The notes: generated from the letters alone by a model not told the origin. DNA of 64,000 nt from Macrostomum lignano (GCA_002269645.1 NIVC01002321.1:1-64000); one strand, 5' to 3'; shown: positions 3,389 to 61,607, counted from the first letter of the stretch. A program made the numbers and translations.

Positions 3389-4340
3389 AGCTGCCGGTAA
3401 GTTCCTGTTACTAATTTGTGCTTTAATTGCCTTGCTTATCCGGGGTTTGCCTATTTTCCATTGCTTGATTAGAGAGCTGAGCCAATTGTGATACCGTATT
3501 ATTTGCTGTATTTATTCAATAGTGAAGTCGCCTAATTGCCTGATTATTTTGCCTAAGGGCCTAATTATTAACCATTACTAAACTCCTCATTATTCACACT
3601 TTCACCATCATTTCACTCATGGCTTGCTAAGCCTTCTCCCTGGGTGGCTAAGCATAAGGAAGTTTGGGTAAGCTAATGGCCTCTCCCCGTGCAAAGCTCG
3701 CCTGTGAGTGCGTGCTGCGGGGCCGTGTGTGCGTGCAGTAGAGGGGATTAGCGAGTCTTGGCACAGAATGGCAGTAGGAATGTTGCAACCCCATGCTGAC
3801 GCGTCCCTTCGCCCTGAGCAATCTAAACTATAGACAGTACATGTTCGCCTCACACTACTCTTAGTAATCAAAGCCGCAAGTCAGCCTCGCTCACAGCCAC
3901 AAAGGATCCCCTGCTGAGAAATCCTCCAGATTGAGCCCAGAGTTCCCGATCATGCCCCAGGCAGAGTCCCTGTACTCGGCTGCATGTGTCTCCCCTGTTA
4001 GCCTAAATCCCCTGGTAACCAATCCAGGCGGGGCTCTAGCCTCGAGAGGTCTGGTAGTGAGATCCAGGTGCGCCAGGTCACTTAGAGTGGTGGCAGCCAC
4101 TCGGTCATGCTCTGACCGAGTGACCAACTATTGCACCTTGGCTACAGGTGGGGTCCATGTGGGTCCTTGGCCCTCTGGTCACGAAAGCGCTACCAAAGCT
4201 ATCAATCATGTGGGCGGGACAGTCTGGTGCTGGAGGTCCGTCAGGTCATTGCCCGGTCATAGGCAGCCTACGGTCATTGCCCCCTCTGGTCATGCGTTCG
4301 TTTCTCAACGGAGCGGAGGGCGACAAGGGCGGTTACATCA
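2110..4340 (+). mobile_element. Probable solo LTR (Gypsy-like), 2.2 kb, antisense in a DEG/ENaC intron
   Basis: Begins TGATGTAACC and ends GGTTACATCA (TG...CA, imperfect inverted ends of about 20 bp). Flanked by 4-bp TSD AAAT (2106-2109, 4341-4344). No transposase or pol ORF. Confidence 0.65.
2968..3048 (+). promoter_or_regulatory. Pol II promoter-like cluster inside the LTR
   Basis: TGACGTCA (CRE) 2968-2975, CCAAT 2988-2992 and TATTTAA 3042-3048 in canonical order. Downstream donor GTAAGT at 3397. Confidence 0.5.
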
Positions 4341-5449: not shown

Positions 5450-6114
5450 CTGGGACCAGTCTCAAGCACTCGTTAGGCACCTCCAGCTCTGCTGGCCGCC
5501 AAGGCTGGAATTTCAAAAGTAGCGCGTAAGGTCGGCCGCCCCCTGCTTGGACTCAACTGCAGGGACATCAGGTCGGTGACCATGGCCCTCTCGGTAATGG
5601 CTGTTTTGCCAGGCATCGTCAGTGAGATCGGCAGTGAGAAATGCCCATTCTGCCTCTCCGGTGTCGAGAATGCGGAGCACTTCATCTGGGAATGCCTTCA
5701 TCTGTTTACTCAGGACAGGCTCACCTACCTCGGCCCAAACCCGGACCTCTCCGACGTTTTCAGGCCCGAGAATCTCTGCCAGCTCGTCCGCTACCCTAAG
5801 GGCTACCGGGCAAGCGACCATCCACCTTCTGGACTCTCCGGAGGGGGACCGCGCTGCAGACACCGGCACCACCGGAACTCCCTGCGCGACACCGCAGCAC
5901 TAGCTGCCCGTGGTCGCCAGAGGTTAGCAAAGTGTGCGGCAACGCCTCCTCGCTGTTTCCAGACGCACGAAGCCCCCTGCAGCTGAGTCAAGTATTGGCA
6001 CTGGAATCTGTCTAGCGAGTGGAAAGGTGGCTTCTAGTTGTGCCGTGTTGCAGCCAGTCGGCTCCTGCATGGTGATCCAACGACCAGTTACCAAGCTGGG
6101 TCGGCAACAACAAC
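5450..6114 (+). mobile_element. Degenerate 3' end of a non-LTR retrotransposon (ORF2 C-terminal CCHC knuckle, 3' UTR, (CAA)n tail)
   Basis: IGSEKCPFCLSGVENAEHFIWEC (CxxC..EH....C), preceded by frameshifted ALSGNGCFARH. Ends in caacaacaac. Confidence 0.75.
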
Positions 6115-6308: not shown

Positions 6309-6935
6309 TGCACCCTGGCGCACTTTAAGCAACATTGTCAGCCAACTGCCCGCCCATTCTACCAACTCCCCTGAGCAGGCACACAAGCGCGCATATACGT
6401 CTGCAGTCATACACACAGGCACACACTCACACGGAAGTGTACAGCGACCCTAACTTTATTTATCGTTAGGCATGTACACGGGGGGTCAAGGACACAAAGT
6501 ACATTTGGGGTCAAGCCCGGAACGCTGTAGCCTATTGGTTAGAGCGTCGGACTCACGACTGAAAGGTCGGGGGTTCGATTCTCGATCCACTCGGAACAAT
6601 TGTGTCCTTGAGCAAGACACTCTGCATTGCTTCAGTTCACCCAGCTGTAAAATGGGTGCCAGCATAGCTGGGGTAATTGAGGGTGAGTGTGGCGAACCCC
6701 CAGTCCTTGGACTGAACAGCCGTAAGCAGCCTTCAGATGTGAGATGGGGCAGGTGTAATCAGTTACTATGTACACTTTCCTGTTCCGGGTTGGTCCTCAA
6801 GTGCGTTAATTGCACGAGCAGAGCCAAGCCGAGGTTCCAATTTAGCCCCAAATTAACGTGACTGTACTTGGGGTCAAGCCCGGACCACTGCCACATCAGA
6901 GCGCCGTGCTAGACCGCCAGGCTACGGCCTCCCCC
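6309..6935 (-). mobile_element. tRNA-derived SINE family B, copy 1 (interrupted by a family A SINE)
   Basis: Minus-strand head gggaggccgtagcctggcgg with A-box. Body homologous to 7413-7683 and 34896-35229. Confidence 0.75.
6524..6767 (+). mobile_element. tRNA-derived CORE-like SINE family A
   Basis: A-box tagcctattgg and B-box ggttcgattc, then ttgtgtccttgagcaagacact...cagctgtaaaatggg resembling the CORE domain. 8-bp TSD atgtacac (6472-6479, 6768-6775). Confidence 0.85.
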
Positions 6936-7412: not shown

Positions 7413-7683
7413 CAAGCGCGCGGATACGTCTGCAGTCATACAGTGTACGCGCAGGCACACACTCACACAGGAGTGTACAGCGGTCCTAACTTTATTTATC
7501 GTTAGGCATGTACACTTCACTGTGCCTTGCGGGTTGGCCCTCAAGGGCGCTAATTCCATGAGCAGAGCCAAGCCGAGATTCCAATTAATGCAACTGCAAA
7601 ATTAAAGCCCGAAAATTAATGCAACTGCACTTAGAATCGAGCTTGGGCCGCTGGCACATGAGAGCACAGGGATACGGCGCCCC
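7413..7683 (-). mobile_element. SINE family B, copy 2 (tail missing)
   Basis: Shares ctaactttatttatcgttaggcatgtacac and gcagagccaagccgag with the other copies. Confidence 0.75.
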
Positions 7684-7778: not shown

Positions 7779-7901
7779 CACAGTAGGGGATGTTGCAGCC
7801 AGCAGCCGCCATGAGTCCATGTGCACTGTCGTAGAAGCAGAAAGGGCCATCAAAAAATGTAACAGCTTCCGGTCGGAGCGGAATAAACACCGGATTCCAA
7901 G
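7779..7901 (-). CDS. DEG/ENaC exon 4: C-terminal half of kringle 1 (C4-C6)
   Basis: Acceptor tatttcttcag| and donor |GTGAGT, phase 1-1, 123 nt. Encodes GPFCFY-x-GCNIPYC (C-x13-C-x4-C), like kringle PWCY..C.IP.C. Confidence 0.8.
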
Positions 7902-8122
7902 CTGAAGAAATAGTGGATCGCAAGCTAGCAGTTTGACATTAGGTCAAACCCTTGAACTTTGAACAATTAACAGGTGTAGAGTTCTGCTATACTGTACGCT
8001 CGTAGTTGTCACGGCATGCATGTGCAGATAGATCAGTTTTCATTTTTTAGATTATTAGTTAATTAGTTAGTTAAACATTTCGAAAATGTTTCTAAAATTC
8101 CAAGCATATGGAAGCGACTCAC

Positions 8123-8458
8123 CCGACTCGCGAATCCGGTACACGCTGGTGAAATTGTCTCCACCACCGCAGTAGACGCCAGGTCCGTTGCCGCCACCGC
8201 AAAAAGTTGAGCACTTCTCCGGCTTAGAATTTCGCACCGGTTTGAGCAGCTGATAATCATCTTCGGCATCAGCTAGCGAGCTACACAGACAGATTTGCTG
8301 ATCGAGCGCCATGTGGGTAAAGTTTCTCCGATAGCAGCACTTTTGGCACAATTCCGGTGACAGAAATCTCGCTGGCTGATCAAAACAGTCCATCATTTGG
8401 TGGAATCGGCTCAGTGCAAATTTTTTCGAGAAGCACCCGATGTACTTTCTAGCAGAGT
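8123..8458 (-). CDS. DEG/ENaC exon 3: WSC domain
   Basis: Acceptor aacgacag| and donor |GTGAGT, phase 1-1, 336 nt open. Encodes KYIGCF...LCQKCC...QICLCS...KCSTFCGG...YCGGGDNFTSVY, the WSC cysteine pattern. Confidence 0.85.
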
Positions 8459-8640
8459 CTGTCGTTAAAATATGTTAAAGAAAGACTTCCTGATAAACGG
8501 ATAAGCGAACGAAGCATTCAAAATAAGTTCTGTATTTTCTTGTAATTTCGATTTGTAAATTAAAACAAATATCGCTTTCCAGTATAATCATTACCTCGTA
8601 AAGGTAACTAGATAGTTAACGTTTGTCAACAGCATAATGA

Positions 8641-8901
8641 GACCTAGAGAGGTTATAGCGTCGGACTCGATTGAAAGGTCGAGGCTTAGTTTCTCGACCC
8701 ACTAGGAACAATTTGTGTCCTTGAGTAAGACACAATTCTGTGTTGCTTCAGTTCACCCAGTTGTAAAATGGGTGCCAGCATTAGCTGGGGTAATTGAGGG
8801 TGTGTGTGGCGACCCCCCAGTCCTTGAACTGAACAGCCGTACGCAGCCTTCAGATGCGACGCGCAATAGCTGCGGCTGAGCTGTCGGTTGCATATCTGGC
8901 C
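8641..8901 (+). mobile_element. SINE family A copy
   Basis: Same CORE-like body as 6524-6767 and 48565-48864, with a degenerate head. Confidence 0.8.
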
Positions 8902-9233
8902 ATTTATCCCTGATTTTGCAAAATCACACGGCTTGTACATATTTTTCTTTTATATACATTAATGGTACGACCTATGATTTCATGACTCAGTTGATGTCAG
9001 TGTGAACGATTCTCTAAGGTTCTATGTATCTGCTTAAGAAATGTTCCTAGTATTACTATAAGAGTTCAGAAGTACGGGAGCCTGGTTGCTCGGAGGTCAT
9101 ATGAGAACACATGGAACCCCTTGCTCTCAGTGTCTAAAACCAACCTACATGTACTAAACAAACGTAACTGCAAAAATCTATAAGCGACATTCAACAGATC
9201 CGCAACACCATGAGTCTGCCAGCTGCAACTTAC

Positions 9234-9593
9234 ACGTAGCAACTCCGAGATCACGCAGGCTCTGCAGAGACAGTCCGGGGGGTTTCCGACATCGTCTGTC
9301 TTCATTCGACAGGTTCAAAGCCCGGATGCGTTCCGCCAGCAGTCGGGCAGACGACTGAAACCGGCCTTGGACTTGTTCAAGCCTTCGAGCCGCCTCGCTC
9401 CAGGCCAGGCATCTTGGCCGATTCAGAAATGATGCCACGAAATCCGAGGTCGATTGGTTATCAGGCTGTTGCGTGCGATCGACAGGCGCGGTCAGGAAGC
9501 TATCAGAGTACACGGCGGCTGCGTCCACGCTGCCAGAGTACTCCTCGCCGGTAGCCGTGAAGCGGCAGTTCTGACCCATAGATCTGGACGAAG
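9234..9593 (-). CDS. DEG/ENaC exon 2: N-terminal half of kringle 1 (C1-C3)
   Basis: Acceptor ttgcacag| and donor |GTAAGT, phase 1-1, 360 nt open. Encodes NCRFTATGEEYSG...RCLAW...RRCRKP, matching kringle C..G..YxG / C..W / CRNP motifs. Confidence 0.8.
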
Positions 9594-15460: not shown

Positions 15461-16289
15461 GAATCGTCGAATATCTCGACGGTCTGGGGGGCTGACGACT
15501 TGATTCTTGTTTGAGAAGGTGCGCAACAAAAGTTAGCCCGTGTTCTTGAATTTCGTGTGCCTGCGTTGCTCCTTTCTGGCGTAGCAAAAACATTGTCAGG
15601 ATCCCCCCCCCCCCTAAGTACGAGTACGAGATAGCTCGACAGGCGGAAAAAGGGCTTGGTATTCCTACTGTTAAAGGCTCCTCTCAATTAAGATGGCTTG
15701 GGTTTTTAAACGAGTTGGTTGCAATCAGAAACAGAGCCGGTATTCTCTTGCCTCTTTGAGCTTGCACTAAGCATGCATACTTGAAATCCCAGCGGAGTAA
15801 GAGTTTTCTTTTCTGAACAGAATTATACATGAATAATTTTGTTGTTGAAGGCCTGTTTTCAATCCTTGATTTGGAATTTCTAGCTACGTCAGCAATGAGC
15901 CTGTGCTTTCATTTTGACAAAGCTGATGTTAGTCATAAAAAGAATGTTTTACGCTGAAAAACGACACCAATGCAAGCTGCGCTCAGCAATTGCGGAGACA
16001 GTGGATCAAATATTTGCTTTTCTTTGCCTATTTGACTAAGCAACTGTCTGGAACAGGATGCAATTCGACTACATCCGGAACGCCAAAATGGTTAAACGCC
16101 GCTTCGAGGCTTTGAAAGCAATGCGTCATCGGCCAGTTGAATATTCCCTGCATCGTTGATATAGAGGCTCAATCCTTGTAATTGTGTACGTTGATGGTGC
16201 CGGGTGATCCCTAACCCACAGCGGGTAGGCGCAGTTGATTGCGTCAGCGGCAACGTTGCACAAGGTCTTGGCACCAGGGACTTTTACGC

Positions 16290-16805
16290 TCGTAGCTCTA
16301 GGGTCTTTAGCGCCAGGGGCTTTAGCACCCGGGTCTTTAGCACCAGGGGCTTTAGCACCAGGGGCTTTAGCACCAGGGTCTTTAGCACCAGGGTCTTTAG
16401 CTCCAGGGTCTTTAGCACCAGGGGCTTTAGCACCAGGGTCTTCAGCACCAGGGGCTTTAGCACCAGGGTCTTTAGCAGCAGGGTCTTTAGCAGCAGGGTC
16501 TTTAGCACCAGGGGCTTTAGCACCAGGGTCTTCAGCACCAGGGGCTTTAGCACCAGGGTCTTTAGCACCAGGGTCTTTAGCAGCAGGGTCTTTAGCAGCA
16601 GGGTCTTTAGCAGCAGGGTCTTTAGCACCAGGGGCTTTAGCACCCGGGTCTTTAGCACCAGGGTCTTTAGCACCAGGGGCTTTAGCACCCGGGTCTTTAG
16701 CACCAAGGGCTTTAGCACCCGGTCTTTAGCAACAGGGGCTTACACCAGGGGCTTTAACACCAGGGGCTTTAGCACCAGGGGCTTTAACACCAGGGTCCTT
16801 AGCAC
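16290..16805. repeat. 15-bp minisatellite (about 34 units)
   Basis: Unit ctttagcaccaggg(g/t). One minus frame reads (GAKDP/GAKAP)n. Confidence 0.95.
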
Positions 16806-17675
16806 GAGAGGACAATCACAGTGGTTAGGGTAAGGCTTATCTAAGAAATTTGCAACAGGGCTGGGTGTTCTATGTCTCTCCGGGCCACCTGTTGAAGCTG
16901 CCGATGTCGTCGGGGCGATGAAAGAGTGTTTGAGTGACCAGCAGTGGTGTATTGAATACACTGGCGCCTATGGAAAAACCCGAACTTCTGACAGTTTTTT
17001 GAATAATTTGAATTTGGATTGAATAATTTGTTTCACTTTGGACGCAAATTTGAATTCTTCGAAATAAAAACGAGAGCCAGCAGAATATTTGAATGCTCTG
17101 TATAGTTGTATAATATTTAGCTCTTGTGCGTCAACTCACATTTAATTGTATTCGAAAAATTCGATCACAAACTATGTGGTTTTACATAATGTCCAGAAGA
17201 AGAAAAAATAATTTGAGTAATTGTAAATAATTTTTCTAAGATAATGAAAGATTTTCATATTTTCGGTAGCTCAGTTGAAAAGAAAACAAGGTAAACAAGT
17301 GTATGAGTTTCAGTTCTCAGAGTATCGAGGTGATTCTCATGCGATTGCACAGCGGCAGTTCGTCATGGAGAACCAGCAGAAAAAAACTGAAAATCAGAGA
17401 GAGAAAAATCATATTTAAGAATAAGAAACCGAAAAAAAGTCCATTTTTGAGGAACGTACGCAAAGCGACACAAGACAGGGCAGAGGAGAGGGGTTTAAAA
17501 CTGGTTACCGACTAGTCAAAACCAGTCGCAAACCAACGCATTTTAGGCCTTTTATAATTTTTGGGATAAAATAGAATTAACCAGTGTCTCAACCATTTCG
17601 CAAGCTATCGTATTGATTTGCTCTTTGACCATCTTCAGTTCTTCGGTCAGATCCAGCAGCTCCAAGCCTCGCCTC

Positions 17676-18431
17676 TCAGGTCAGGACGAACTTCACCCAG
17701 TCGGCGCTCGTCTCGATCGCCTCCTCCACCTGAGCGTCGGTGAAGTGCAGCAGGCGGCATTTCTTTTGCTTCTTATTGAACAGCACGTGCTGGCTGTCCT
17801 TCGATCGCGTCGCCATGGCAACGCACTCGATAGCACTGTCGATGTTGGTCAGGTCAGTGAAGCAGTACTCAGAGCTGGGATTGTAGCTGGACCGCTTGAA
17901 CGGAGTTCGCCTCCACTGGCCGTTGAGTTGGGCCGCAATCGGAGCAGCTGCAGCGAACTCGCACGCAAATCCAAGTTTGTAAGAGCAAAAGAAGTCGGCG
18001 AGTTTGCTATTATTTGTGTATGTACAAACGCAGTCCTGCTTACCGCCTACGTTGTTTGGGTCATTGCTGACCCACAGAGAGGCATTCAGAGGCAGATTGT
18101 CTTTGCCGAACACCGTCTGCCAGCCCTCCCTGCTGGCGTTTCTCTAATCCGCCATGTCGGTCACTCCGAGCCAGATTTTATTGCCAGTTTGAAAACTCGG
18201 CATGCTCGGCAGCAGCTGCAGCGAGCCGTACGAGTTGATGAGCTCGCCTCCGATCGATGAGCACTGCCGATTGGCCTCGCACCAGGTGAAGCTCTGGGAT
18301 GGGTTCACGAATATGCACCTGCCGGCCTCGATATAGAAGGGAGCGGGGCACTGAGCCAGCACTGGCAGCAGTGAGCAGAGCAAACTCAAAATAATGTGGA
18401 TAAATGTTCGCACTGCGACTGACCTTTGCAT
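17676..18431 (-). pseudogene. Intronless secreted C-type lectin + PAN-like protein, copy 1, with one in-frame TAG
   Basis: Signal peptide, then CPAPF...FTWCEANRQCSSIGGEL...IWLGVTD, NDPNN..QDC..C......FACE and SAIECVAMA...VLFNKKQKKCRLL. ORFs 18144..18431 and 17676..18113 share a frame. TAG at 18144-18146 is GAG in copy 2. Confidence 0.85.
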
Positions 18432-21075: not shown

Positions 21076-22234
21076 TCAGAGGTGAGTTAGCATTTTTGGT
21101 GTGCGAGTCGTTCTGAACAGCTGATTCACTAAAGGGACACGGGGGCGACTCCTGGTGTTCCCGTGCCCCTGAGTCCTCGAGTCATTGGCGTGGAAACTCC
21201 GGATCCCGCTCGCGGTGGAAGGAGGCTTTGGAGTGGCTCTGGCCGCACCGGCGGCATCGGTGAGCAAATCGGCACTGAGCTCTGGAGCAGCCACCAGCCC
21301 GGTTGAAGTCAAAGCAAATTCCATGGCCTCCTTTTCGAGTTGCACGAGCATTTGCCTGGCGCCATCAAGTACGCTGCCACAAGCCCTAGGTCAGATGCTG
21401 GCTGATTCAAACTCTGATTCTGCTGCTTTTGCGCGCGACACTCGTCATTGAACCGCATCACCTTCGGCCGCTCAAAGCCAAGATCGAACAGTTCGACAAC
21501 CCGAGCATTGATACTCAACCAGCTCCGACACATCCACGGTTCCCGTCTCGGAAAGACGCACCAGCTTGCCGTCATGCAACATGTGAATCAGCGCGATTGC
21601 GTTTCCAGTAATCCAGTCACCGAATGACATCGACTCAACAGCCGCTGACTTTGACTTCATGCTCACGCGGCCCGATTTATCGACTGTGGTCAGTGGTGGC
21701 CAACCCGGCATCCTTCTGCATACGGCTGCTTAGATGTTCCACTGGCCTGTACGCCCCTCCGGCAACTGTCCCTTCTGACTCAGGGTTGGGGCCCTCATTC
21801 AAAACCCTCTCAAAAAGGCACGACATCTCACTGGGGAGATCATTGCGTCTCCGTAAATCGCGAGTGTCAGCTTCTAGAGCGGCTTCTTTCTTGCGCAGAG
21901 TCAGGATGCGCACCCTCTTCTCCGCGAGCTCCAGCTCCTTGTCCAGGTCGCCTCCCACAGCGCCAGTCGGGCCCCTGCCGCCTTGAGGCTCAAAGGCCCG
22001 TCCGCTGCTTTTGCTGCTTCTGGAAGTGTTTTCCGTGTCTACGAGTAGTTCTTCCTGACGTGGATCAGTCAGGGCGTTAAGTTCCAGCTGCGTTGCTTTG
22101 TGTTGAGCAGCCAAGCGTTCCCTGAGTACTGCCTTACGGCCGTTTGAAGAGAGGCCTGCCTGTCTAAGCGCGGCCTTCAGGCCTTTCACAGTCTCGGGCA
22201 TATGCACTGTGTGGCTTGAGTCAGCCATTGACAA
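21076..22234 (-). mobile_element. DIRS/Ngaro gag-like ORF1 with N-terminal SAP domain, frameshifted
   Basis: TVKGLKAALRQAGLSSNGRKAVLRERL fits SAP. Downstream fragments (MSFGDWITGN..., KVMRFNDECR) lie in shifted frames directly upstream of the RT. Confidence 0.65.
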
Positions 22235-22509
22235 GCATTTCGCAACCCATTAACACGCACGCGGGATGCGTGCTATTGTCCATCGATAAAAAAATTAGTT
22301 TAACGAGTTTATTAGATGACCCAAATATTAATAAAATATTAATATAAATATTAAATATTTTTAAATTTATTATTAAATGTTATTACCTCGTATTAATATT
22401 ATTATTATTAATATTAATAATTATTCCTATTGATGATTAGCATGAACATGAGGGGAAATGTCTAAAGCCATAGTTTTTCTCGAAGCATTAGTCTTTTGAT
22501 AGATACGTC

Positions 22510-22921
22510 TTACTCAAACACAATGTTAATCAAATTGTTGTTGCCGTCAATGCTAACACGCATCTTCTTGGTCGGACAGGCCTCGATATGAACTGGCCGA
22601 GGAACCGGCTCGTCAATTGATTGTGGGGTGGCATTGCAACTGGTAATCGTCATCACTTGCGTGCAGACAGTAGAACTGATAGAGCCGCTCGCATTACCGC
22701 TCGCATTAGCAGAGAAAGACGCCTCATTGGACGGCATTGTGCTTGTGCTTGGAATATGCCGGCTTAGTGCACAGTTCACTGCCTTGGAACTCCTGAACAG
22801 ACTGCGGTCCCGGCGCCTGGTTAAATACCTTTTGACCGTCTTCTCGCATTTCTGGCCGGTAATTAGCATTATGTCTTGCAGCGAATGGCCGGCCGCGTCT
22901 AGATCGCACACTCTAGTGACT
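22510..22921 (-). CDS. Crypton-type tyrosine recombinase, exon 2
   Basis: Acceptor ctcccacag|, phase 2, 91-bp intron. Joins to HCIRVTRVCDLDAAGHSLQDIMLITGQKCEKTVKRY (catalytic Y). Total 500 aa with no disablement seen. Confidence 0.82.
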
Positions 22922-23012
22922 CTGTGGGAGAATTAAAGGACAGTAATTTTATATGAACTAGTTAAAACTATTTATATAGCATATTGGAAAGCGAAATTTA
23001 CTTACGAGCTAC

Positions 23013-24103
23013 CTAATACAGTGATTAGTGTAGACCTTGCTTAGACCGGCCTTCGCACTCAGATTCTTCATAAATTCTTGAAGGAATCGATACCCTCGAG
23101 CGGTCTTCTCAGAGAAACGGTACGGTTTTCCAGGTTGTCCTTGAAGAGGCTTCGGAAAAAACGATCGAGCAGACTGCGGTAGATGACTGATGTATGTATC
23201 TATAAGCTCAGTTTCATAAATTCTGGCGTGCTTTCCGTCGACGCTTTTCTCCGGATGATCAACATCAGCTGACCGATTCTTCGAAGGTAGGGACGGCAGG
23301 GCGAAATACTTGCGACCGTCAGCATCTACACTGTGTTGCAAACAATCACGCCCCATCAAGGCACGTAAGTGTTCCTGTCCACGTTCGCCCAGCTCGTAGA
23401 GAATCCGAAATAGCGTCTCATCCTGCAATCTTTCAGCATCACGCCGGTTGAAATAGTCACGGATCTTTAGCATATCGCCTTCCTCGATTGCATCATAGGT
23501 GCGTGTCTCTTGGCCAGCTTGAATGAATTGCTTGATCTTGTAGCAGAGCATTCTGTTGCTTCCATCGAAAGCCGTGTGCTTAGCAATCAGATTGGTTGGA
23601 CGCTTGCACAAGATATTTAAATATCGTTGGATGCCTGCTCTAATGCAACCAAGTGATGCTTGTGCGTAATACTTCCCTTCTTTCGTCTCTAATTGAAAGT
23701 AGTAGAGTCTCAAATACTCATTTAGTGCTCCATCATCCAAATCCTGATAGTCGGTACGCAGTCCTTTGCTCATACAGAATTCCAAAAACTTCCTACCATT
23801 CTCTTCCATTTGTCGTCGCGTGCTTATGGGTAGTCCGTCCAACTCGAAACTGTCTAAATCAGCCAATTCAGCCGAGAGATGATCGTCTGCAAGTTGATTC
23901 TCGTATTCTTCGAGACCGTTGGACTGGCCATTATCGTCCTCTATAAACTTAATAAAAGCCGAAATAAGCTCCTGACAATCATCGTCAAGTGACGATAGTC
24001 GCGTAATAACGTCCAGTTCATCGGTAGTAGCGCCACTAATACAGTTATCAGGGAGATTCTTGTAGTTTATCAATGGCGGAACAATTTGTCTTCCGGTTGA
24101 CAT
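23013..24103 (-). CDS. Crypton-type tyrosine recombinase, exon 1
   Basis: LGERGQE (catalytic R) and SKVYTNHCIR (HxxR), in a DUF3504/ZMYM-like context. Donor AG|GTAGCT, phase 2. Confidence 0.85.
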
Positions 24104-27420: not shown

Positions 27421-28345
27421 AGATTAACAACAATTTAGGAATGCAAGTTCAAATTTCGATAGTTTATTTTTCTTTTGATTCCATCAGGGTGAAAAACTTT
27501 TCAAGCAAACTGTCTAAAATTGAAACGAAAAGTTATAATTTTTCATAGCTGGTTGAAGTTTATTGCACAGTTTAATATTAGAATACAAAGAGATTTCCCC
27601 ATTTGGAAATGGAACAGAAAAAACCACAACAAAGACGGGTAAAAAACAATTCCACAATGCTTCTTAATATTCGGACCAAAATTGAAACGATCGAACCAGC
27701 TGTTAAGTCTGTTCTCAGTCTGTTCTCATGGTGCTTTTATTGCGATTGCACAGTCGGCTCTTCGGTCAGATCCAGCAGCTCCAAGCCTCCTCGCCTCTCA
27801 AGTCAGGACGAACTTCACCCAGTCGGCGCTCGTCTCGATCGCCTCCTCCACCTGAGCGTCGGTGAAGTGCAGCAGGCGGCATTTCTTTTGTTTCTTATTG
27901 AACAGCACGTGCTGGCTGTCCTTCGATCTCATCGCCATGGCAACGCACTCGATAGCACTGTCGATGTTGGTCAGGTCAGTGAAGCAGTACTCAGAGCTGG
28001 GATTGTAGCTGGACCGCTTGAACGGAGTTCGCTTCCACTGGCCGTTGAGTTGGGCCGCAATCGGAGCAGCTGCAGCGAACTCGCACGCGAATCCGAATTT
28101 GTCAGAGCAGAGAGGTCGACGACATTAGTGGAGCTTTCAAAGGTGCCTACGCAGTCCTGTTTACCGTCTTTATTGTTTGGGTCACCGTTGATCCACAGAG
28201 AGTCATCGAGAGGCAACTGGCCTCTGCCGAACACCGTCTGCCAGCCCTCCCTGCTGGCGTTTCTCTCATCCGCCATGTCGGTCACTCCGAGCCAGATTTT
28301 ATTGCCAGTTTGAAAACTCGGCATGCTCGGCAGCAGCTGCAGCGA

Positions 28346-29530: not shown

Positions 29531-29811
29531 GTCTCTTAGCCCCTGTCTCTTGGTTGGCGCCCCTGTCTCTTGGTTGGCGCCCCTGTCTCTTGGTTGGCGC
29601 CCCTGTCTCTTGGTTGGCGCCCCTGTCTCTTGGTTGGTGCCCCTGTCTCTTGGTTGGCGCCCCTGTCTCTTGGTTGGCGCCCCTGTCTCTTGGTTGGTGC
29701 CCCTGTCTCTTGGTTGGCGCCCCTGTCTCTTGGTTGGCGCCCCTGTCTCTTGGTTGGCGCCCCTGTCTCTTGGTTGGTGCCCCTGTCTCTTGGTTGGCGC
29801 CCCTGTCTCTT
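29531..29811. repeat. 20-bp tandem array (about 14 units)
   Basis: Unit tggttgg(c/t)gcccctgtctct. Confidence 0.97.
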
Positions 29812-30712
29812 GATTCTCAGTTTCCCAGTAGTTTTTCTGGGGGGGGGGGTGGCAGTTTTATGTTGCATTTCACATACTCGTATTGCTTTCGTATCCATTT
29901 AGCTTGAGACGAAGTCGCTTGATGAGACAAACTGGACATTAAAGCAAAAGGACTCTGGGTTTGTCTCCTCTGTGAGTTAAGGACCACTACAGTAGAATAT
30001 TATGTTACTTAAGTAGTCCTTGGTTGCGATGTTTGACAGAGTCAAACAATGGACGCAAACATCTTGTTAATTCGTGGAAAAATGCTTTCCACGAGTTCCA
30101 TGCTTCATTAAATTGATGCATTTTGGCATGCAGTGGAGGAGGCGCAAAAACTGGGGAAGCATGCAGTTGCTAGGAGGAAAGGTTTGGCATGTAGCTCGTA
30201 TTGAGTGAGTTTCCCCACCTAACGGAAGCCAGTTGATGGATAAACAAGTCTTTATGTCCATTAGGGTTGATCGTCTAGCATTAGCTATCGTTTTGGCTAT
30301 AGAATCTAGCTGGTGCAATTAGGAGCCTAATGGTGAAAAAGTACTCGTAGGTCATAGTCTGAACTGCGGAGCATTCGATAATTAACCACTGTCGATGGAA
30401 AATGGAAAACAAAAAAACTGCATTTTGCCCGCCTCGACCAGAGTAAGTTTGCGAACCTGCATGATCCCCCTTAATGCTGACTTTCTGGTACATTTCCTGT
30501 CAAAACCAACTGGTAGAGTAGAAGCTGTTGCAACAGCTCTGCTCTGAGATCTCACATGCTATACGTGTACGATGGTTAAGGCTTTAACTTGAATGTTCTA
30601 CTTACATGTTAAATGTTGCATGAAATCCACTGCAAAATACATGTATACAATTTGCCAACCCGCTATCGTTCACCCGCTTTCAAATTCTGCCCGCGGGGGA
30701 TTTCTATGAAAA

Positions 30713-40000: not shown

Positions 40001-41275
40001 CCAGCATCAATGGCAATTAAGTTTTTTCTTTTATCTTTTTTCTTGTTAGTAGCTATATGCATCCAAAGGTGGAAAATATCAACTGAATGTTTAAGTTGCT
40101 TCATGTATATCTTTAATGAATTGCAGAACATATGAGAATGAATTTAATGTTTCAAAGAAATTAATTTTTTGTGCTTCAGACAGCTAATTTCATTGATAAT
40201 AAATCAGATGCAAAATTGTTTTAATACTATTTCTTGACAAATCAAATCATGCAACTTTTTTATTATTCGTTACTCTTATTTTATTTTCAGTTTCTACTAC
40301 CTCTTGTTTTGACTCATTATGTTTACTTGTAACTTACAATACAAATTGTAAATCAGTTTAAAAAAAATTGTGTGAGAACAACAAAAAACAACTGTTTTTA
40401 AGAGAAAAATAGTCGATTTTATCTACATAAATCAAATTCTGTTTGTTCTGACTAACATATTGGGTGATCAATAGCAAAAATTCATCTAAATACATAAAAA
40501 AACATCCAAAAAACCTAACAATGTGCTGAGAAATTTTTTTTTCATAACTAGAGAAAAAAAAGTGGTACTTTTTCTCATCCCACAGATGAGGACTTTGAAT
40601 AAAAATAACTTTGGTGCTACTTGCTTTGTTGTAGTCAGCAAAATCTCTCTTTGTTAGGTTAATTTTGTGCTATTGAAAAAAACTTAAATTGAATTTAATT
40701 AACTTTTCTTTTTTAATATAGAATGAAACTGCCTTAATTGATATTTTAGTGTTAGATATGACTATCTTTCTTAAAAAAACAGCAGAAAACGCAGCTATTA
40801 GCTTATTCTATCAACAGAACAAATTAATTAAAAGTGGATTTTTTAATCATTCATAATGTTACGTTTCTAGCAAAAATCGAAATAGCAACATCTGCTTTGC
40901 AATCGAAAGAGTTAAATGGGTTCTAGGTTGTGCTAACCAAAGTTTTAAATAACATTTATCAATTTTCTTCTTTAATAAGACCACGTGAACAGAATGTAGC
41001 TTCTCTAAAGTGGGTATTATAGCTCGTGCGATAAAAAAAATATATATCAAAAAAATGAAATAGCGCACTCTATTGAGATTAACATCAAAAGTTCAATGTT
41101 AAAAAAGATTAAGACCCATGAGAGGCATTTATTTTTTAAGTCCATTTAGAGCTAAAATAAGAAAAGATTCAATATTTCGGGCTGATTTTCAAAAATATTT
41201 GTTTCACTGCTTACGACTAAACTTTGAGAACAACCCGACTATATCATTAAATCATTGTTCTTTGATATCTTATAC

Positions 41276-42344
41276 CAGGGTCTCAATTGTGTATTAGTGC
41301 TAACTAGAACAAGAATCCTATCTTAGCTAAATGTATACCAATTGATGCCAATCGCCAGTATAGGCCTATGTTAAAAAACAAAAGATTCCTAGCTAAAATG
41401 TATGCCAAAAATTTCTCTTAAAAGCATTTGGTTTTCATGAGTTAAGTCTTCTAAGAAAAGGTTTTGTATATAAAATTAATGATGTACAAAATTTACATTT
41501 TTAGCAATACTTTTTACTAATTTTATTTCTTGTTAATTTTAAAAAAAGAAAACCAGTTATCACTAACGTTATAGACTATGCTAATTTTTTTATAATTTAC
41601 ATTAAAATGTTAATTTATATTACAATTTTCATGCTTGGCCAAAATTTGTATATAAAAAATTAACATGAATTTGTATGTCAATTTGTACTCCAACTCTGAA
41701 AGGGGTCATTCATATATTAGAATTTTCCCAGACTCTGGAAGGTTACATATATGCTAGAAAATTCTGGTGTACAAATGACCTCTTTGAAAGTTGGCATACA
41801 AATTTTGTATATAAACTTATGTAAATGTTTTTGGCATACAAATTTTGACACACAAATTCATGTCAATTTTTTTCACATACTAATTTAGTAAATAAATTTA
41901 TGCTGTGCATGAAAATTATAATTCAAATGAACACTTTTATGTAAAATAAAGGGAAATTTTTATAGTCTTGAAAGTCAATGATAAATTTTTTGCTTCTTTA
42001 AAATTAACAATAAAAAATTAATTATTATAAATTATTGCTAAAAATGTAGATTTTGCATTATTATTTCTATAGGTTTAATTTAAGTTTGTTTAAAATAAAA
42101 ATATTTGTAATATTTTAAAAAGACTTTTTGTACAAAAGTCTTTCTAATCTTAGGAAACTCTACTTGTGAAAACCGAATGACCTTTTTTAAAAGGAATTTT
42201 TGGCGTATATTTTAGGGAAATTTTTTGTTTTTGGCATATACTGGTATACATTTAGCTGAGATAAGATTCTTGCTCCGTCATACACTATTACACAATCCAG
42301 GCCCTGAGAATTTTCTGGCATATATGTAACTTTCCAGAGTCTGG
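41276..42344. mobile_element. AT-rich foldback element / compound MITE
   Basis: About 41276-41715 is an imperfect inverted copy of about 41770-42306. 41728-41765 is an inverted copy of 42307-42344 (2 mismatches in 38). Confidence 0.65.
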
Positions 42345-43840
42345 ATCCTACAACAACTTTGAATTAAATATTTCTCATAGGTGCATATCATTCTAATAAT
42401 AAGAAAAATTTATTTTTAAGGTTTAATAAAAATTAATGCCAAAAACTTGCTTATTTTAGTAAAGATACAAATCAAAATTAAGAAACTCCAAAAGCTCAGT
42501 CTTGATCAAATCTTATATTATATTGTCAAAAATATTGAATCTCAAAAAGCTTAAAAATTTAATATAATTTGACCCCTAGCAAAATGGTACATTATATTAG
42601 ATACTAAATAATCTCTACCTATAAAAATCAAAACTCTGTCTGTGTGTGTGTGTGTGTGTGTTATATTATATTTATAGAAAATTAGGCCTACAAAGCTATA
42701 ATGCTAATGGGTATTTGTTTTTATTTTTATATAGACCATTTTATTTTTTTAATCTAAATATTGCTATGTAGTAAATTTATAACAATACCTTGAAAATATC
42801 AAACTTTAAAAGAGTAGTACTTGCCTTGTAAAACATTTAATAAAATTTATAATATAAACACAATTAATATTGTTAGTGATTGGCAAATTCCCATAGTCTA
42901 AAAGGTGGCCTTTATATATTTAATAGAAAGTTCTAGTATGTTTTTTCTCTTATACTAATAATATTAATATAAACATAATATATATAATTTTCTAATCCAA
43001 TTTTAGCATGCATAGCACTAGTAACATTGTTATTGTTGTGTACTTAATACCAATTTTACAAACTTTTAGACTCTTGCTTATTTTAAAAAAGCCTAAAATT
43101 TTAGAATTTAGAATATTTTATTCGTGCTAATTTGTAAGTTTGATTTTATATTATTTTGATGCTTGTTGTTTTGCCCTTAGCATAACTTAAATCTATGATA
43201 ATAAACTGATAGTCAAAATAATTTGTTATAAATATTAATGAATAATAAAGAACAATTAATTAGTAACAATTATTATAAATGCTTTAATACTAAAATTAAC
43301 TTTTAATTAAAATTAAAATTAAAATTAATGATTAGAATCCTGCTTACTTTTTATATACCAATGTCTTAAAGATACCTAAAAGTGCCAAATATTTAAAGAG
43401 GCTTTAAGAAAACTATACTAAAAATATTGAATTATCTAGATGCATTTAAATGCAATAGGCTTGCTTTCCTTTTCCTATCTATTAACTACTTAGAATTTGT
43501 ATGCTATGCTAATATTGTCACTTTTTTGTCTACTTCATATAAATGCTAATTTAATTTTAGTATATTTAATCATTTTTAGTATATGGAGATATATTTCTAG
43601 GGTTAGTATTTTTTTAGATTTATTTGTGCTTCCATGTAGTTCTTTGCAAACTAAAGATAACTATAAAGGTTTTTTTGACATACAGAGTTAACTGTGCTAT
43701 AATATGTACTATATATATTTTATAACTTTAGTACAGATCCTTCCAAACGCCCTCCAAGCCTCAAAATTCGCAGAATTGCATCAAAATCTTCAGAACGATC
43801 TCAAACTTCTCGAAGTCGTTTTAAACTTCTCAAAGTCGCC

Positions 43841-44645
43841 TCAAACTGATCAGAATCATCACAAACTGATCAGAATCATCTCAAACTAATCAGAATCATC
43901 ACAAACTGATCAGAATCATCTCAAACTAATCAGAATCATCACAAACTGATCAGAATCATCTCAAACTAATCAGAATCATCTCAAACTGATCAGAATCATC
44001 TCAAACTGATCAGAATCATCACAAACTGATCAGAATCATCTCAAACTAATCAGAATCATCACAAACTGATCAGAATCATCTCAAACTGATCAGAATCATC
44101 TCAAACTAATCAGAATCATCTCAAACTGATCAGAATCATCTCAAACTGATCAGAATCGCCTCAAACTGATCAGAATCATCTCAAACTAATCAGAATCATC
44201 TCAAACTGATCAGAATCATCTCAAACTGATCAGAATCATCACAAACTGATCAGAATCATCTCAAACTAATCAGAATCATCACAAACTGATCAGAATCATC
44301 TCAAACTGATCAGAATCGCCTCAAACTGATCAGAATCATCTCAAACTAATCAGAATCATCACAAACTAATCAGAATCATCTCAAACTGATCAGAATCATC
44401 TCAAACTAATCAGAATCATCTCAAACTGATCAGAATCATCTCAAACTGATCAGAATCGCCTCAAACTGATCAGAATCATCTCAAACTGATCAGAATCATC
44501 TCAAACTAATCAGAATCATCACAAACTGATCAGAATCATCTCAAACTGATCAGAATCATCTTAAACTGATCAGAATCATCTCAAACTAATCAGAATCATC
44601 ACAAACTGATCAGAATCATCTCAAACTGATCAGAATCGCCTCAAA
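43841..44645. repeat. 20-bp tandem array (about 40 units)
   Basis: Unit tcaaact(g/a)atcagaatcatc. Confidence 0.97.
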
Positions 44646-45519: not shown

Positions 45520-46149
45520 ATGCGGGTATGCATCATAGGCGCAGGTGTCAGCGGTCTAGTCAGCATCAAAGCCTGTTTAGAAGAGGCTGAGCAATTTCAG
45601 CCAGTCTGTTTCGAGCGCACCAACGATATTGGCGGTTTGTGGCGATTTCGAGAAGACGATGGACAGGCATGCGTGATGCGGTCAACTGTGATCAACACTA
45701 GCAAGGAAATGATGGCTATCAGTGACTTTCCACCCAGCTCGTCTTATCCGAACTTTATGCACAACAGTCAGGTGCAGCAGTACCTGAGAGACTATGCCGA
45801 CAAGTTCAATTTGAGGCAGTACATTCAGTTCCGTCATACTATTGAGAAGGTGGAGAAATGTCCAGATTTCAACTCTACCGGACAGTGGATTGTCACGGTG
45901 AAAGACGACCAGTCTGGTGTAAGTCGTACCGAGACATTTGGCGCTGTGCTGGTGTGTGTCGGTCACCATGCCAACCCTCACGTGGCCAGCTTTGCTGGAT
46001 TAGATACGAACTTCCAAGGCCAGGTGTTCCATCCGCACAGTTATCGCGACTGCACAGGTGACAATTTCAAAGGCAAGCGCGTGCTAATTGTTGGGATTGG
46101 CAATTCGGGCGGCGATCTGGCTGTCGAATTGAGTCGGGTGGCCTCTCAG
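45520..46149 (+). CDS. FMO: Flavin-containing monooxygenase, exon 1
   Basis: GAGVSG (FAD), FQGQVFHPHSY (FMO signature FxGxxxHxxxY) and GIGNSGGD (NADPH). Donor CAG|GTAGGT, phase 0. Confidence 0.95.
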
Positions 46150-46345
46150 GTAGGTTGAAGTTTTGGTTCGGTTTCTTAGAAAATTATTTTTTGAAGGCTG
46201 GTTTTACATAAATATATAGATTAGCTAGAAAAATGACAACATTGAGTTTGTTTGTTTGAATAGACACGCATGTATTTATATGGTATTTACTAAGGTATAT
46301 GCTTTACAACGATCGACTGCTACAACTCAACTGCTTAACCTAACT

Positions 46346-48864: not shown

Positions 48865-49004
48865 TTATGTAGCGTTATTAGTTTTTAAGCTAATCTTATC
48901 TCTTTAGTCTTTCATTGTAAATCTCAGGCCTAATTTGGGGGGGGGGGGCTGCTACCCGAATATTAAAGCACGACTTCGCATCCTAATTGACTTGCACTTT
49001 CCAG

Positions 49005-49375
49005 CCACCGGCTGCGAATTCGTTGACGGCACCGTCGAGGACAATCTGGACGTTGTTACGAGTATCGTTGCCACCGGTTACAAATTCTCGTTTCCATTCC
49101 TGCCGGAAGATGTGATTTCGGTAGTTGACAACAGGCTGGACCTGTACAAGTACGTGTTTCCGCCCAAACTGGAACGGTCAACCCTGGCTTTTATTGGCTA
49201 CGTGCAACCGCTTGGCGCTCTGCACCCGATCTCTGAGGGTCAGGCCAGATGGGCCGTCCAGGTGTTCAAAGGCATGGCACCGCTGCCAACTGCCGAAGCT
49301 ATGCTAGCGGATGTGGAAGCTAAGCGAACGGCTATGGCTAGTCGATATGTGAAAAGTCCGAGGCATACTATTCAG
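49005..49375 (+). CDS. FMO: FMO exon 3
   Basis: ATGYKFSFPFL...LYKYVFPP...PISEGQARW...SPRHTIQ. Phase 1-0 splice sites. Confidence 0.92.
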
Positions 49376-49801
49376 GTAAATAGGTGTTATTTATTATTGA
49401 CACTGTACAGAAGTTACCTTAGTCTTTGGCAGATATGTAGCGTAAAAATCTTTATGCATTAAAGAAAGTAGTTCATATTTTGACTCCTTCAAATTTTGCC
49501 GATATGTAGGGTAATAATCTTTCTAAAGTGAATAAATTCATTCATCTGATTTTCGAATTTTGCCGATATGTAGTGTAACAATTTTCCTAAATTAAAAAAC
49601 CGTTCTTCATAAAATTAATTTCTCACCGATATGTAGCGTATAAATCTTTATGCATTGAAAAAGGCATTTCCTTCTCGAGCTTCCCTTAATGTCACCGATA
49701 TGTAGTGCAAAAACTCAGTTGTGTATATTGAAGAATTCCATTCGTATTCTCTGATTTCTCACCGATATGTTGAGTAACAATTATAACTGCCCGCATTCCA
49801 G

Positions 49802-50640: not shown

Positions 50641-51199
50641 CGGAATCTAGATTTTCGCATCAATGAAAAGTCAAATTCTTACACTTTGATTTCCGAAACG
50701 ATTTTATCAATTCATACATAAGACATAAAGTTTTGACACATGCGCTTATCATGCAGTTTAGAGAGAGATTTTTAGTATATGGGATATGTAGCATATAATA
50801 AATACATGATTTATTGATTATAATAGTTTTCAAATTTGTTCAATGTCCGGTGTGTTCCTGAGAGCTTTTAATTAGTTTGTTATATAATTATTGTTTCATA
50901 GGTGCTTTAAAATTATGATTGAAATCTGCCAGCATCCTACGATTAAATTAAACTATTTGTTAAGAAATCCAATTAGATTTATCATTAATAGATTGTCAAT
51001 TTTATTTTGTTTTCTTTCATGGTCTTAAATTGAATATAATTTAATATATATTCATTTAATAATATAATATAGTGAATATAATATTTGTGTTATTAGCAAA
51101 TTTAATTATATTGCACACCCAACAGTCCTACATGCAAGACATACAGTAGTCTTCAGACTTTTCTCTTGACTCTTGTCCGTCCTATTCATACTATCTTGT

Positions 51200-52325
51200 T
51201 TCTCAGTCTTACTGCTACTGTCTCATCTCACTCTATCACTCTCCTCATATCCCTCACTGTCTCCTCTCCTCGCCTCACCTCTCCTTTTCTCTGATCTCCC
51301 CTCTCACAGTGTCTCCTCTCCCATCTCACTCTCTCATTGTCTCTTCTCTCATCTCTCCCTCTCACTGTCTCTCTTCTCCCATCTCCCTCTCTCTGCCCCC
51401 TTCCATCTCCCCCTCTCACTGTCTCGCATCTCCCTCTCACACTGTCTCTTCTCTCATCACTCCCTCTCACCGTCCCATCTCCCTTTCTCACTATCTCCCT
51501 CTCTCACTATCTCTCCCTATCACTGTTCTTCTCTCCCATCTCCCTTTCTCACTGTCTCTCCTCTCCCATCTCCCTTTCTCACTGTCTCTCCTCTCCCATC
51601 TCACTTTCTCACTGTCTCTTCTCCCATCTCCCTCTCTCACTGTCTCTCGTCTCCCATCTCCCTTTCTCACTGTCTCTCCTCTCCCATCTCCCTCTCTCAC
51701 TGTCTCTCCTCTCCCATCTCCCTTTCTCACTGTCTCTTCTCTCATCTCTCCCTCTCACTGTCTCTCGTCTCCCATCTCCCTTTCTCACTGTCTCTCCTCT
51801 CCCATCTCCCTCTCTCACTGTCTCTCCTCTCCCATCTCCCTTTCTCACTGTCTCTTCTCTCATCTCTCCCTCTCACTGTCTCTCGTCTCCCATCTCCCTT
51901 TCTCACTGTCTCTCCTCTCCCATCTCCCTTTCTCACTGTCTCTTCTCTCATCTCTCCCTCTCACTGTCTCTCGTCTCCCATCTCCCTTTCTCACTGTCTC
52001 TCCTCTCCCATCTCCCTCTCTCACTGTCTCTTCTCTCATCTCTCCCTCTCACTGTCTCTCGTCTCCCATCTCCCTTTCTCACTGTCTCTCCTCTCCCATC
52101 TCCCTCTCTCACTGTTTCTCCTCTCCCATCTCCCTCTCTCACTGTCTCTTCTCTCATCTCTCCCTCTCACTGTCTCTCGTCTCCCATCTCCCTTTCTCAC
52201 TGTCTCTCCTCTCCCATCTCCCTCTCTCACTGTCTCTCCTCTCCCATCTCCGTCTCTCACTGTCTCTCCTCTCCCATCTCCCTCTCTCACTGTCTCTCCT
52301 CTCCCATCTCCCTCTCTCACTGTCT
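51200..52325. repeat. CT-rich minisatellite (about 29-30-bp unit) upstream of the APP-like gene
   Basis: Unit approximately tctcactgtctctcctctcccatctccct. Source of several spurious long ORFs. Confidence 0.95.
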
Positions 52326-52473
52326 CCTGTAAGTCAGTTTTAATGCAATGTTCAGCAACAAAAATCCGAAAATTAATTTCAGCAGAAAAGCAGGCCACCG
52401 TTTTGTGGATTACCTATTCGTCTTAAAAGTTTGACTCCATCTTCTGAGAAACTCAGCAAACAAGAAAAGCAAC

Positions 52474-53166
52474 ATGGCTCATCGCGCGCCTCTGCTGCTG
52501 TCACTGACTCTCATGATTGCCAATGTGGTGGTTGCCCTGGAAACGGCACCAACAAAATCGCCCACCACTGTTGCGGCTACTGCTGGCGCTACAGCCCAGC
52601 CGACAAGCGGGCCAAGCGCCGACGGATTTCGCGGCCGAGTTGCCGTCGCCTGCTCCGACGGGCACCGACGCGCCGCCTTGGCCTGGTCGGAGAGCGCCGG
52701 AGAATGGCGCCAGATCCCCGGCGCCAACAGCTGTCCGGCGTCGGAAAGCGACGCTGACGCCATCCGTGATCTGTGCCGGCGCGCCTACCCTGGTCAGCGG
52801 ATCGTGAACGTGGAGCCGGCTGTGGAGCACGAAGCATTCCCCAACTGGTGCCCGCTTGACAACTCGCATCGGCGTAAGGCTGGCCAACCCTGTCCGATTC
52901 TGAATGTCCGCCCGTTCGAGTGCCTGTCCGGCCCGTTCCAGAGCCCCTCGCTGCTGGTTCCGCGCGGCTGCGAGTTCAAGCACAACTCTAGCGACACCGA
53001 GAACTGCCAGCAATACGCCTATTGGCGTACAGTTGCTAAGGACTATTGCGCCAATATCAAGCTGCCTGGAAAATGGCATTTGGATCGGTACGCACCGCTG
53101 CGACCCTGCAATCGGATGCTGAGCGCTGGCTACTTTGCCGCCGTGGAGTTTGTCTGCTGCCCTGAG
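52474..53166 (+). CDS. APP: Amyloid precursor protein family, exon 1: signal peptide and E1 (GFLD + CuBD)
   Basis: CRRAYP...IVNV...FPNWC...VRPFECLSGPFQSPSLLVPRGCEFKH...LRPC...FAAVEFVCCP. Donor GAG|GTAAAA. Confidence 0.93.
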
Positions 53167-53258
53167 GTAAAATTAGACTCAAAACGAGTTTGTTTTTTTA
53201 GATTTTGTACAAAAACTCTACACACAGCGGCTGTCGGAGTTTCTTGGATTCGCATCTA

Positions 53259-53725
53259 TGAATTCCTTACCCCAATGTACACTCACTGCTAGCCTAGAAT
53301 TCCTTACCCCAATGTACACTCACTGCTAGCCTAGAATTCCTTACCCCACTGTACACTCACTGCTAGCCTAGAATTCCTTACCCCAATGTACACTCACTGC
53401 TAGCCTAGAATTCCTTACCCCAATGTACACTCACTGCTAGCCTAGAATTCCTTACCCCACTGTACACTCACTGCTAGCCTAGAATTCCTTACCCCACTGT
53501 ACACTCACTGCTAGCCTAGAATTCCTTACCCCACTGTACACTCACTGCTAGCCGTTAATTCCTTACCCCAATGTACACTCACTGCTAGCCTAGAATTCCT
53601 TACCCCAATGTACACTCACTGCTAGCCTAGAATTCCTTACCCCAATGTACACTTACTGCTAGCCTAGAATTCCTTACCCCACTGTACACTCACTGCTAGC
53701 CTAGAATTCCTTACCCCAATTTACA
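53259..53725. repeat. 37-bp tandem array, APP intron 1
   Basis: Unit agaattccttacccca(a/c)tgtacactcactgctagcct. Confidence 0.95.
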
Positions 53726-60988: not shown

Positions 60989-61034
60989 GTAATAAAAGTA
61001 TTCGAAATTCTATTTTACGCGTACAATACTCGAC

Positions 61035-61597: not shown

Positions 61598-61607
61598 ACT
61601 AACCCAG

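Follow-up and report, generated by a model that had tools for sequence, protein, structure and literature searches.

The 64,000-nucleotide stretch of Macrostomum lignano DNA analyzed here (GCA_002269645.1 NIVC01002321.1:1-64000, referred to below as the window) carries on its minus strand part of a gene for a DEG/ENaC channel, the 3' part of which lies beyond window position 1. Five cysteine-rich exons lie between the first exon of this gene and the next exon homologous to the channel family, and we lean toward reading them as a cassette of two divergent kringle-like modules, the first of which has an exon for a WSC domain in its intron. In the order of transcription, the channel and cassette exons are as follows, with the candidate kringles called K1 and K2, kringle cysteines numbered C1 to C6, and slashes marking splice junctions.

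12794-12212, minus strand: channel exon 1, with the ATG, the N terminus, the first transmembrane segment and the start of the extracellular domain; donor GAAG/GTTAGT, phase 1.
9593-9234, minus strand: exon A, candidate first half of kringle 1 (K1a), 360 nucleotides (nt), AG acceptor, donor GTAAGT, phase 1-1.
8458-8123, minus strand: exon B, predicted WSC domain, 336 nt, AG acceptor, donor GTGAGT, phase 1-1.
7901-7779, minus strand: exon C, candidate second half of kringle 1 (K1b), 123 nt, AG acceptor, donor GTGAGT, phase 1-1.
7369-7127, minus strand: exon D, predicted first half of kringle 2 (K2a), donor GTGAGT, phase 1-1, containing 'HYTGAANRTMTARRCLTW'.
4723-4598, minus strand: exon D2, predicted second half of kringle 2 (K2b), acceptor ctag/AC, donor TGCT/gtaaga, phase 1-1, with C3 to C6 in 'RIPCSREPFLSSSRPGCFTQKHGYLAFEECEIDNC'.
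1793-1440, minus strand: channel exon E, 'CVFGDRAC...GLCHKFN', phase-1 acceptor at 1793, 3' end at 1444 or 1440.
About 466-213, minus strand: channel exon F, covering about 222-295 of the Pfam ASC profile, 3' end uncertain.

The channel gene provides the frame in which the cassette is read. Exon 1 matches the Pfam ASC family (PF00858; E = 1.5e-14, 54.3 bits against a gathering threshold of 23.6, profile 1-88), and its matches in the PDB are FaNaC1 (8on7, E = 2.2e-4) and ENaC alpha (6wth). Exon E aligns to residues 276-311 of human ENaC alpha, the segment after the finger domain, and the phase of its acceptor suits the donor of exon 1 as well as those of all cassette exons, D2 included. Joined without the cassette, exons 1, E, and F gave one continuous ASC match (profile 1-287, 92.8 bits, E = 3.3e-26), which makes the five cysteine-rich exons an insertion relative to the family. 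Given that exon 1 precedes the cassette and exon E follows it, the cassette product would be located in the extracellular finger region, about 25 residues ahead of the conserved 'C-F-G-x2-C ... G-x-C-x-x-F-N' segment. The same-strand open reading frames (ORFs) of the two large introns held no further Pfam domain and no CUB domain. A tandem repeat array (192-1358) lies in the intron between the last two ASC exons.

GTRAG donors and phase 1-1, as read from the sequence, are common to all five cassette exons, and exons A, B, and C are open frames with lengths divisible by three. For these three exons, the coordinates given in a preliminary description of the locus were confirmed, together with the phases, AG acceptors, and GTRAG donors. 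The GC content of the exons (0.51-0.59) exceeds that of the introns separating exons A to D and of the intron before exon A (0.36-0.47), and GC at third codon positions (0.53-0.62) is like that of clear exons elsewhere in the window. The complete cassette, in the order K1a-WSC-K1b-K2a-K2b, encodes 395 residues with 22 cysteines. Since all cassette junctions are in phase 1, skipping exon B, or the entire cassette, would stay in frame. The cassette introns contain copies of a repeat resembling a short interspersed element (SINE; 6410-6842, 7446-7586, and 8737-8859), with pieces that are 88-94% identical and with the exons untouched, and a retrotransposon-like zinc-knuckle ORF without a Pfam match lies on the plus strand at 5576-5986. 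Two cysteine-bearing minus-strand ORF pieces also occur in the interval from exon D2 to exon E: one at 4137-4229 with 'PDCPAHMIDSF...DPTCSQ', and one at 3620-3880 with '...RRTCTVYSLDCSGRRDASAWGCNIPTAILC...', which has 'GCNIP' in common with exon C. Neither scored with kringle, WSC, or Pfam models, and both may be remnants of decayed exons.

Kringles were sought with a hidden Markov model (HMM) built from 20 sequences; 17 kringle seeds were checked against Pfam, and 17 of 17 matched PF00051. This model and the WSC model described below were run with filters off and with composition-preserving shuffles as the control. An unbiased kringle scan of the 3243 ORFs in the window set two clearly apart from the rest. 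Both are on the minus strand and follow closely downstream of exon C: the ORF at 7403-7107 (10.5 bits, matching the N-terminal half of the model) and the ORF at 4727-4572 (14.2 bits, the top score, matching the C-terminal half). Exon D, within the first of these, scored 11.8 bits with the kringle HMM (1 of 3000 shuffles did as well) and covered 7-30 of the Pfam Kringle profile. Joined to exon D2, it matched Pfam Kringle library-wide at E = 4.3e-4 and 21.0 bits, under the gathering threshold of 34.3 bits, and matched the purpose-built HMM at 22.2 bits (E = 7e-9; 0 of 3000 shuffles), with a glocal alignment that was nearly full-length. The cysteine gaps of K2 are 34/48/12/12/4, compared with 20/27/11/11/4 in plasminogen kringle 1, and the last three are canonical. 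Judged by sequence, exons D and D2 together are a recognizable, highly divergent second kringle. Neither this kringle nor the channel gene around the cassette figured in the preliminary description. A proposal that 'NNAGGHESAPWF' in exon D was a C3-C4 region without cysteines was dropped when exon D2 was found.

K2 also supplies the comparison that gives meaning to exons A and C. Exon C (41 residues) aligned with exon D2 (42 residues) almost end to end (BLOSUM62 local score 42; 2 of 5000 shuffles, p about 4e-4), and exon A aligned with exon D around 'RCLAWSEAARRLE' and 'RCLTWADVKTNLE' (35 of 5000 shuffles, p about 0.007), while the crossed pairs A-D2 and C-D, which served as negative controls, were not significant. 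The paralogy of A with D and of C with D2 indicates that K1 and K2 arose by an old tandem duplication and share one two-exon structure, and because the A-C and D-D2 pairs are divided at the same place by an intron of phase 1, the WSC exon sits in an intra-kringle intron, as expected if a symmetric exon was inserted. The locus itself thus gives direct evidence for the central inference of the preliminary description. Comparing exon order in a paralogue had been proposed in the preliminary description as a check, and K2 indeed has the same two exons without a WSC exon between them.

The same alignments place the insertion differently from the preliminary description, which had put it in the C3-C4 loop. 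C3 of K2 ('IPCSRE') stands opposite a leucine of exon C ('IPLRPE'), and the cysteine of 'RRCRKPPG' in exon A stands opposite a histidine in exon D. By homology with K2, the insertion point is then in the long loop joining C2 to C3, about 9 residues ahead of the canonical C3 position. The proposal that a symmetric exon entered a kringle intron thus keeps its intron, matched in place and phase by that of K2, but changes its loop, and the reported C3-C4 spacing of about 150 residues is correct as the distance between the cysteines now present (151 residues) but not as a homologous insertion point. On this alignment, six cysteines are kept in K1 solely by the relocation of one. The window-wide ORF scan found no kringle or WSC ORF beyond these, and no hidden exon that would complete either half of K1 as a kringle of its own, an outcome that the preliminary description had named as fatal to its proposal; the intron between exons B and C is just 221 nt long. 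A tblastn comparison of the exons with the window itself gave no close paralogous copy. The junction of exons C and D was also considered as a copy of the kringle-WSC junction of Kremen, as both have 7 residues between cysteines, and is more simply an ordinary linker between kringles.

The kringle motifs of K1 noted in the preliminary description (NC..., RCLAW, RRCRKPPG, GPFCFY, and GCNIPYC) are all present. Exon A has C1 with the canonical C-x8-Y-x-G, C2 in 'RCLAW', and a lineage-specific cysteine in 'RRCRKPPG' that is new to K1 and lies 18 residues upstream of the end of the exon; exon C has leucine at the canonical C3 position, C4 in 'GPFCFY', and C5 and C6 in 'GCNIPYC'. The resulting gaps are 51/39/39/13/4, with six cysteines divided three and three, the third displaced, and extra segments of about 31 and about 12 residues. 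With the kringle HMM, exon A scored 6.0 bits (13 of 3000 shuffles), exon C 6.6 bits (profile 58-78; 3 of 3000 shuffles), and the two joined, which is the alignment without the WSC exon that had been proposed as a check, 7.7 bits (3 of 3000 shuffles). These scores (p about 0.001-0.004) weakly support exons A and C as halves of a kringle-like module. Support for the assignment of the halves comes from this signal and from the paralogy to D and D2, but not from Pfam or from a window-wide ranking, as discussed below.

The exon between these halves was compared with a WSC HMM built from Kremen and from yeast Wsc1 and Wsc2; the Wsc1 and Wsc2 seeds matched PF01822 in Pfam. Exon B scored 14.7 bits (E = 1.5e-6 at Z = 1), a score reached by 0 of 3000 shuffles, and aligned end to end (profile 5-94), the eight canonical cysteines all falling in register. 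It has the WSC cysteine pattern, from the Y-x-G-C start through the C-x3-C helix, C-x-C, C-x3-C-x-G, and C-G-G to the V-Y end. The count of ten cysteines, eight canonical and two extra in MMDCF and QKCC, agrees with the preliminary description. In an independent MAFFT alignment, exon B fell on the WSC part of the Kremens, and the kringle HMM, as a negative control, gave it no score. Pfam reported no WSC or Kringle match for exon B even at E<=10, and the WSC gathering threshold of 27.8 bits was not reached, so that the earlier statement of a WSC domain on its own exon stands on the targeted model and the eight cysteines but not on Pfam.

Structure prediction gave a similar picture. The AlphaFold2 (AF2) model of exon B by itself had a predicted local distance difference test score (pLDDT) of 45, and its Foldseek matches were not significant; with the Kremen alignment, pLDDT rose to 69 and the predicted template-modeling score was 0.64. 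Foldseek placed yeast Wsc1 (7pz2) at the top for the Kremen-aligned model (probability 1.0, template-modeling score 0.56-0.62), the other best PDB matches being a fungal glyoxal oxidase and Kremen1 (0.5-0.6 overall), although this test of the fold is partly circular because a confident model needs the Kremen alignment. From sequence and model together, we accept exon B as a predicted, divergent WSC domain, complete on one phase 1-1 exon. In the Kremen1 structure, the beta1 and beta5 strands of the WSC domain are adjacent and antiparallel (PMC5014086). The model of exon B has beta1 at residues 3-10 and beta5 at 102-108 of 111 residues, so that beta1 starts 2 residues into the exon and beta5 finishes 3 residues before its end. 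With these strands adjacent and antiparallel, the termini of the WSC domain would be close together, as an inserted domain needs.

Searches for relatives covered proteins, structures, metagenomes, and the literature. A phmmer search of the PDB with exons A to D found nothing. Among 5.8 billion proteins, a word-indexed search was equally empty, whether the query was A+B+C or a 761-residue composite, as were exact look-ups of three ORFs from the window and scans of metagenomes in which exon B and ASC exon 1 were the queries. When exon B was run through HMMER in full against 1.84 billion representatives, a single match emerged, P0001, at E = 1.6e-41. We rejected it as a homologue: its 3017 residues are the translation of tandemly repeated DNA with a unit of about 53 residues, and its E value arises because weak matches to a satellite translation add up. 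The literature searches, which covered open-access text, turned up neither a kringle into which another domain had been inserted nor a kringle or WSC module in any DEG/ENaC channel.

The rest of the window contains other genes and repeats. Two copies of a segment about 10 kb apart (17613-18260 and 27603-28324) each carry a C-type-lectin-like minus-strand ORF, of which the one at 17676-18113 matches Pfam Lectin_C (E = 0.003) and the one at 27971-28324 has no Pfam match; near-identical antisense ORFs occupy the plus strand of both, and the arrangement suggests that a lectin exon underwent local segmental duplication. On the plus strand lie flavin-containing monooxygenase exons at 45520-46158 (Pfam FMO-like, E = 2.4e-80) and 48935-49462 (E = 1.8e-39), an exon of an APP-like gene at 52474-53292 with a signal peptide and the E1 region (APP_N, E = 2.9e-12; APP_Cu_bd, E = 3.3e-11), and exons of a coiled-coil gene at 60607-63477, the first of which matches Pfam KLRAQ (E = 2.8e-18). 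At 21677-24103 on the minus strand, a SAP-domain ORF (E = 3e-7) adjoins two ORFs for which Pfam gave no match, one of 364 residues with an ATG (23009-24103) and one of 133 residues, and these three may form a cluster of mobile-element or orphan genes. Long arrays of simple or tandem repeats, at 16204-16833, 29536-29907, and 51173-52426 as well as at 192-1358, give rise to long artefactual ORFs in several frames. GC content is about 0.45-0.55 outside a low-GC block at 30-44 kb, within which 40001-44000 is very AT-rich (GC 0.25-0.27).

What the preliminary description observed at this locus is partly confirmed, and its interpretation is partly supported. With all five exons spliced in, the WSC domain would be nested in the C2-C3 loop of K1, and the whole is most simply modeled as a channel subunit whose finger region carries the 395-residue insertion. 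Such an arrangement probably originated by exon shuffling: either a 1-1 WSC exon entered the phase-1 intron inside a kringle, or K2 lost such an exon after the duplication. A phase-1 intron of the channel gene would have taken up the cassette as a whole. Its function might be that of an additional head, binding a ligand, a glycan, or matrix, or tethering the channel, on a finger that is variable and linked to gating. A more specific version, in which the finger bears a Kremen-like binding head with a folded WSC domain nested in a discontinuous kringle and followed by a second kringle, we regard as possible but doubtful.

Several observations weigh against the cassette as we read it, and they bear in different ways on what else these exons could be. 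Polypyrimidine tracts are weak at the acceptors of exons A and B. In the case of B this would suit alternative splicing, in which transcripts without the exon encode two contiguous kringles and the nested form is minor, nonproductive, or regulated; the phase-1 junctions would permit it, the pyrimidine-tract score is 8 at the exon B acceptor versus 12 at that of exon C, and A and C are collinear and kringle-like once B is removed. The exon B donor is nonetheless strong (GTGAGT), its ORF and ten cysteines are intact, and we consider this explanation unlikely. Other adverse points concern K1 itself. It is far more degenerate than K2; even with the E-value limit at 10, Pfam found no Kringle or WSC match in A or C, in these two joined, or in A+B+C; exons A and C are at noise level among the 3243 ORFs of the window, several unrelated ORFs scoring alike; and hmmalign, in glocal mode, put just the last 23 residues of K1 on the kringle model. 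K1 might accordingly be a relic, with A and C now linkers or a new structure and the nesting historical only, its fold lost after the WSC domain arrived or after exon losses in a (kringle-WSC)n array. The C-terminal limit of the glocal alignment, the Pfam match in K2 with none in K1, the leucine in place of canonical C3, and the first two cysteine gaps (51 and 39, versus 20 and 27 in plasminogen kringle 1) all fit a relic. Against this, K1 has kept six cysteines, three in each half, along with C1-x8-Y-x-G, C-x2-W, the canonical C4-C5 and C5-C6 gaps of 13 and 4, and intact ORFs and splice sites, and we give a relic little credence.

A third group of adverse points concerns the context of the exons. 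Exon 1 can be spliced directly to exon E in frame, yielding an ordinary channel, the model of exon B is confident solely when Kremen sequences are supplied, and the case is built on one genomic sequence, with no homologue of any cassette exon found. The five exons could thus belong to a separate gene or transcript on the same strand, housed in the first intron of the channel, or be captured exons with no function, and in either case add nothing to the channel protein. In favor of this, exons 1, E, and F make a complete ASC match on their own, and one weak candidate for an independent first exon, the sole one, was found at 11313-11184. However, phases match at both ends of the cassette, the locus yielded neither a convincing signal-peptide exon nor a convincing terminal exon, and same-strand nested genes are uncommon, and we rate this reading as distinctly improbable. 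An assembly error in exon order, or chance resemblance to kringle and WSC domains, would be consistent with the individually weak scores of A and C and with an order that has no confirmation from outside sequence. Against it, the window is free of Ns (0 in all), the introns carry ordinary SINE-like repeats, the WSC and K2 matches are significant, and the A-D and C-D2 paralogy, with its matching intron and its negative controls, would be hard to obtain by chance; an artefact of this kind seems very improbable indeed.

If the reading of two kringle-like modules with a WSC exon inside the first is correct, it would provide the first example both of a nested kringle and of a DEG/ENaC channel with shuffled extracellular protein- or glycan-binding modules, and it would suggest gating or tethering through an extracellular ligand or matrix component. 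It would also be a clean example of a phase 1-1 exon placed in a phase-1 intron within a small disulfide-rich module. The uninterrupted paralogue K2 adjoins K1 and would act as an internal control, making the locus a natural experiment on how far a kringle tolerates insertion. More broadly, the hypervariable DEG/ENaC finger would be able to gain ready-made binding modules. If the exons are not co-expressed, the locus would simply be a record of exon shuffling in an intron.

Among known systems, Kremen1 and Kremen2 (Kringle-WSC-CUB) are the sole well-known family joining a kringle to a WSC domain. The likeness extends to detail: 'CRFTATGEEYSG' in exon A resembles 'CFTANGADYRG' of Kremen1, and in vertebrate KREMEN1, too, an intron divides the kringle, at NYCR/NPDG in exon-level ORFs. 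The kringle and WSC domains of Kremen1 pack tightly and jointly form one binding surface (PMC5014086). In Kremen, however, the WSC domain follows the kringle, whereas here it would lie inside K1, so that the linear Kremen layout is not reproduced; the same-strand ORFs of this locus contain no CUB domain, and a second kringle is present. The WSC domain occupies two exons in Kremen and a single exon here, the intron positions in the kringles differ by about 12 residues, and the host is an ion channel rather than a single-pass receptor.

The preliminary description called insertion of one domain into another unusual among small disulfide-rich modules, a statement qualified by laminin, in which the L4 domain sits between Cys3 and Cys4 of an LE (EGF-like) domain (PMC5338690). 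The two cases would be alike in having a domain inserted inside a small disulfide-rich module. They differ in the types of module, and the laminin arrangement is solved structurally and conserved in all laminins, whereas here there is one sequence.

Within the DEG/ENaC family, the GRIP domain of ENaC and the extracellular regulatory and cysteine-rich domains of nematode degenerins are elaborations of the same most variable extracellular region, the finger. The cassette stands immediately ahead of the family's conserved C-x-F-x-G-x2-C / G-x-C-Y-x-F-N segment. To our knowledge, the known elaborations are family-specific sequences and not shuffled kringle or WSC modules. For the modules themselves, the closest parallel is in plasminogen, apolipoprotein(a), and HGF, which have tandem kringles with phase 1-1 module boundaries and an internal intron in each. 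The cassette shares with them its tandem two-exon kringles and phase 1-1 boundaries, although its kringles are far more divergent, with K2 at 21 bits compared with a Pfam cutoff of 34.3. Unlike in those proteins, the internal kringle intron here is also in phase 1, which would allow it to accept a 1-1 exon.

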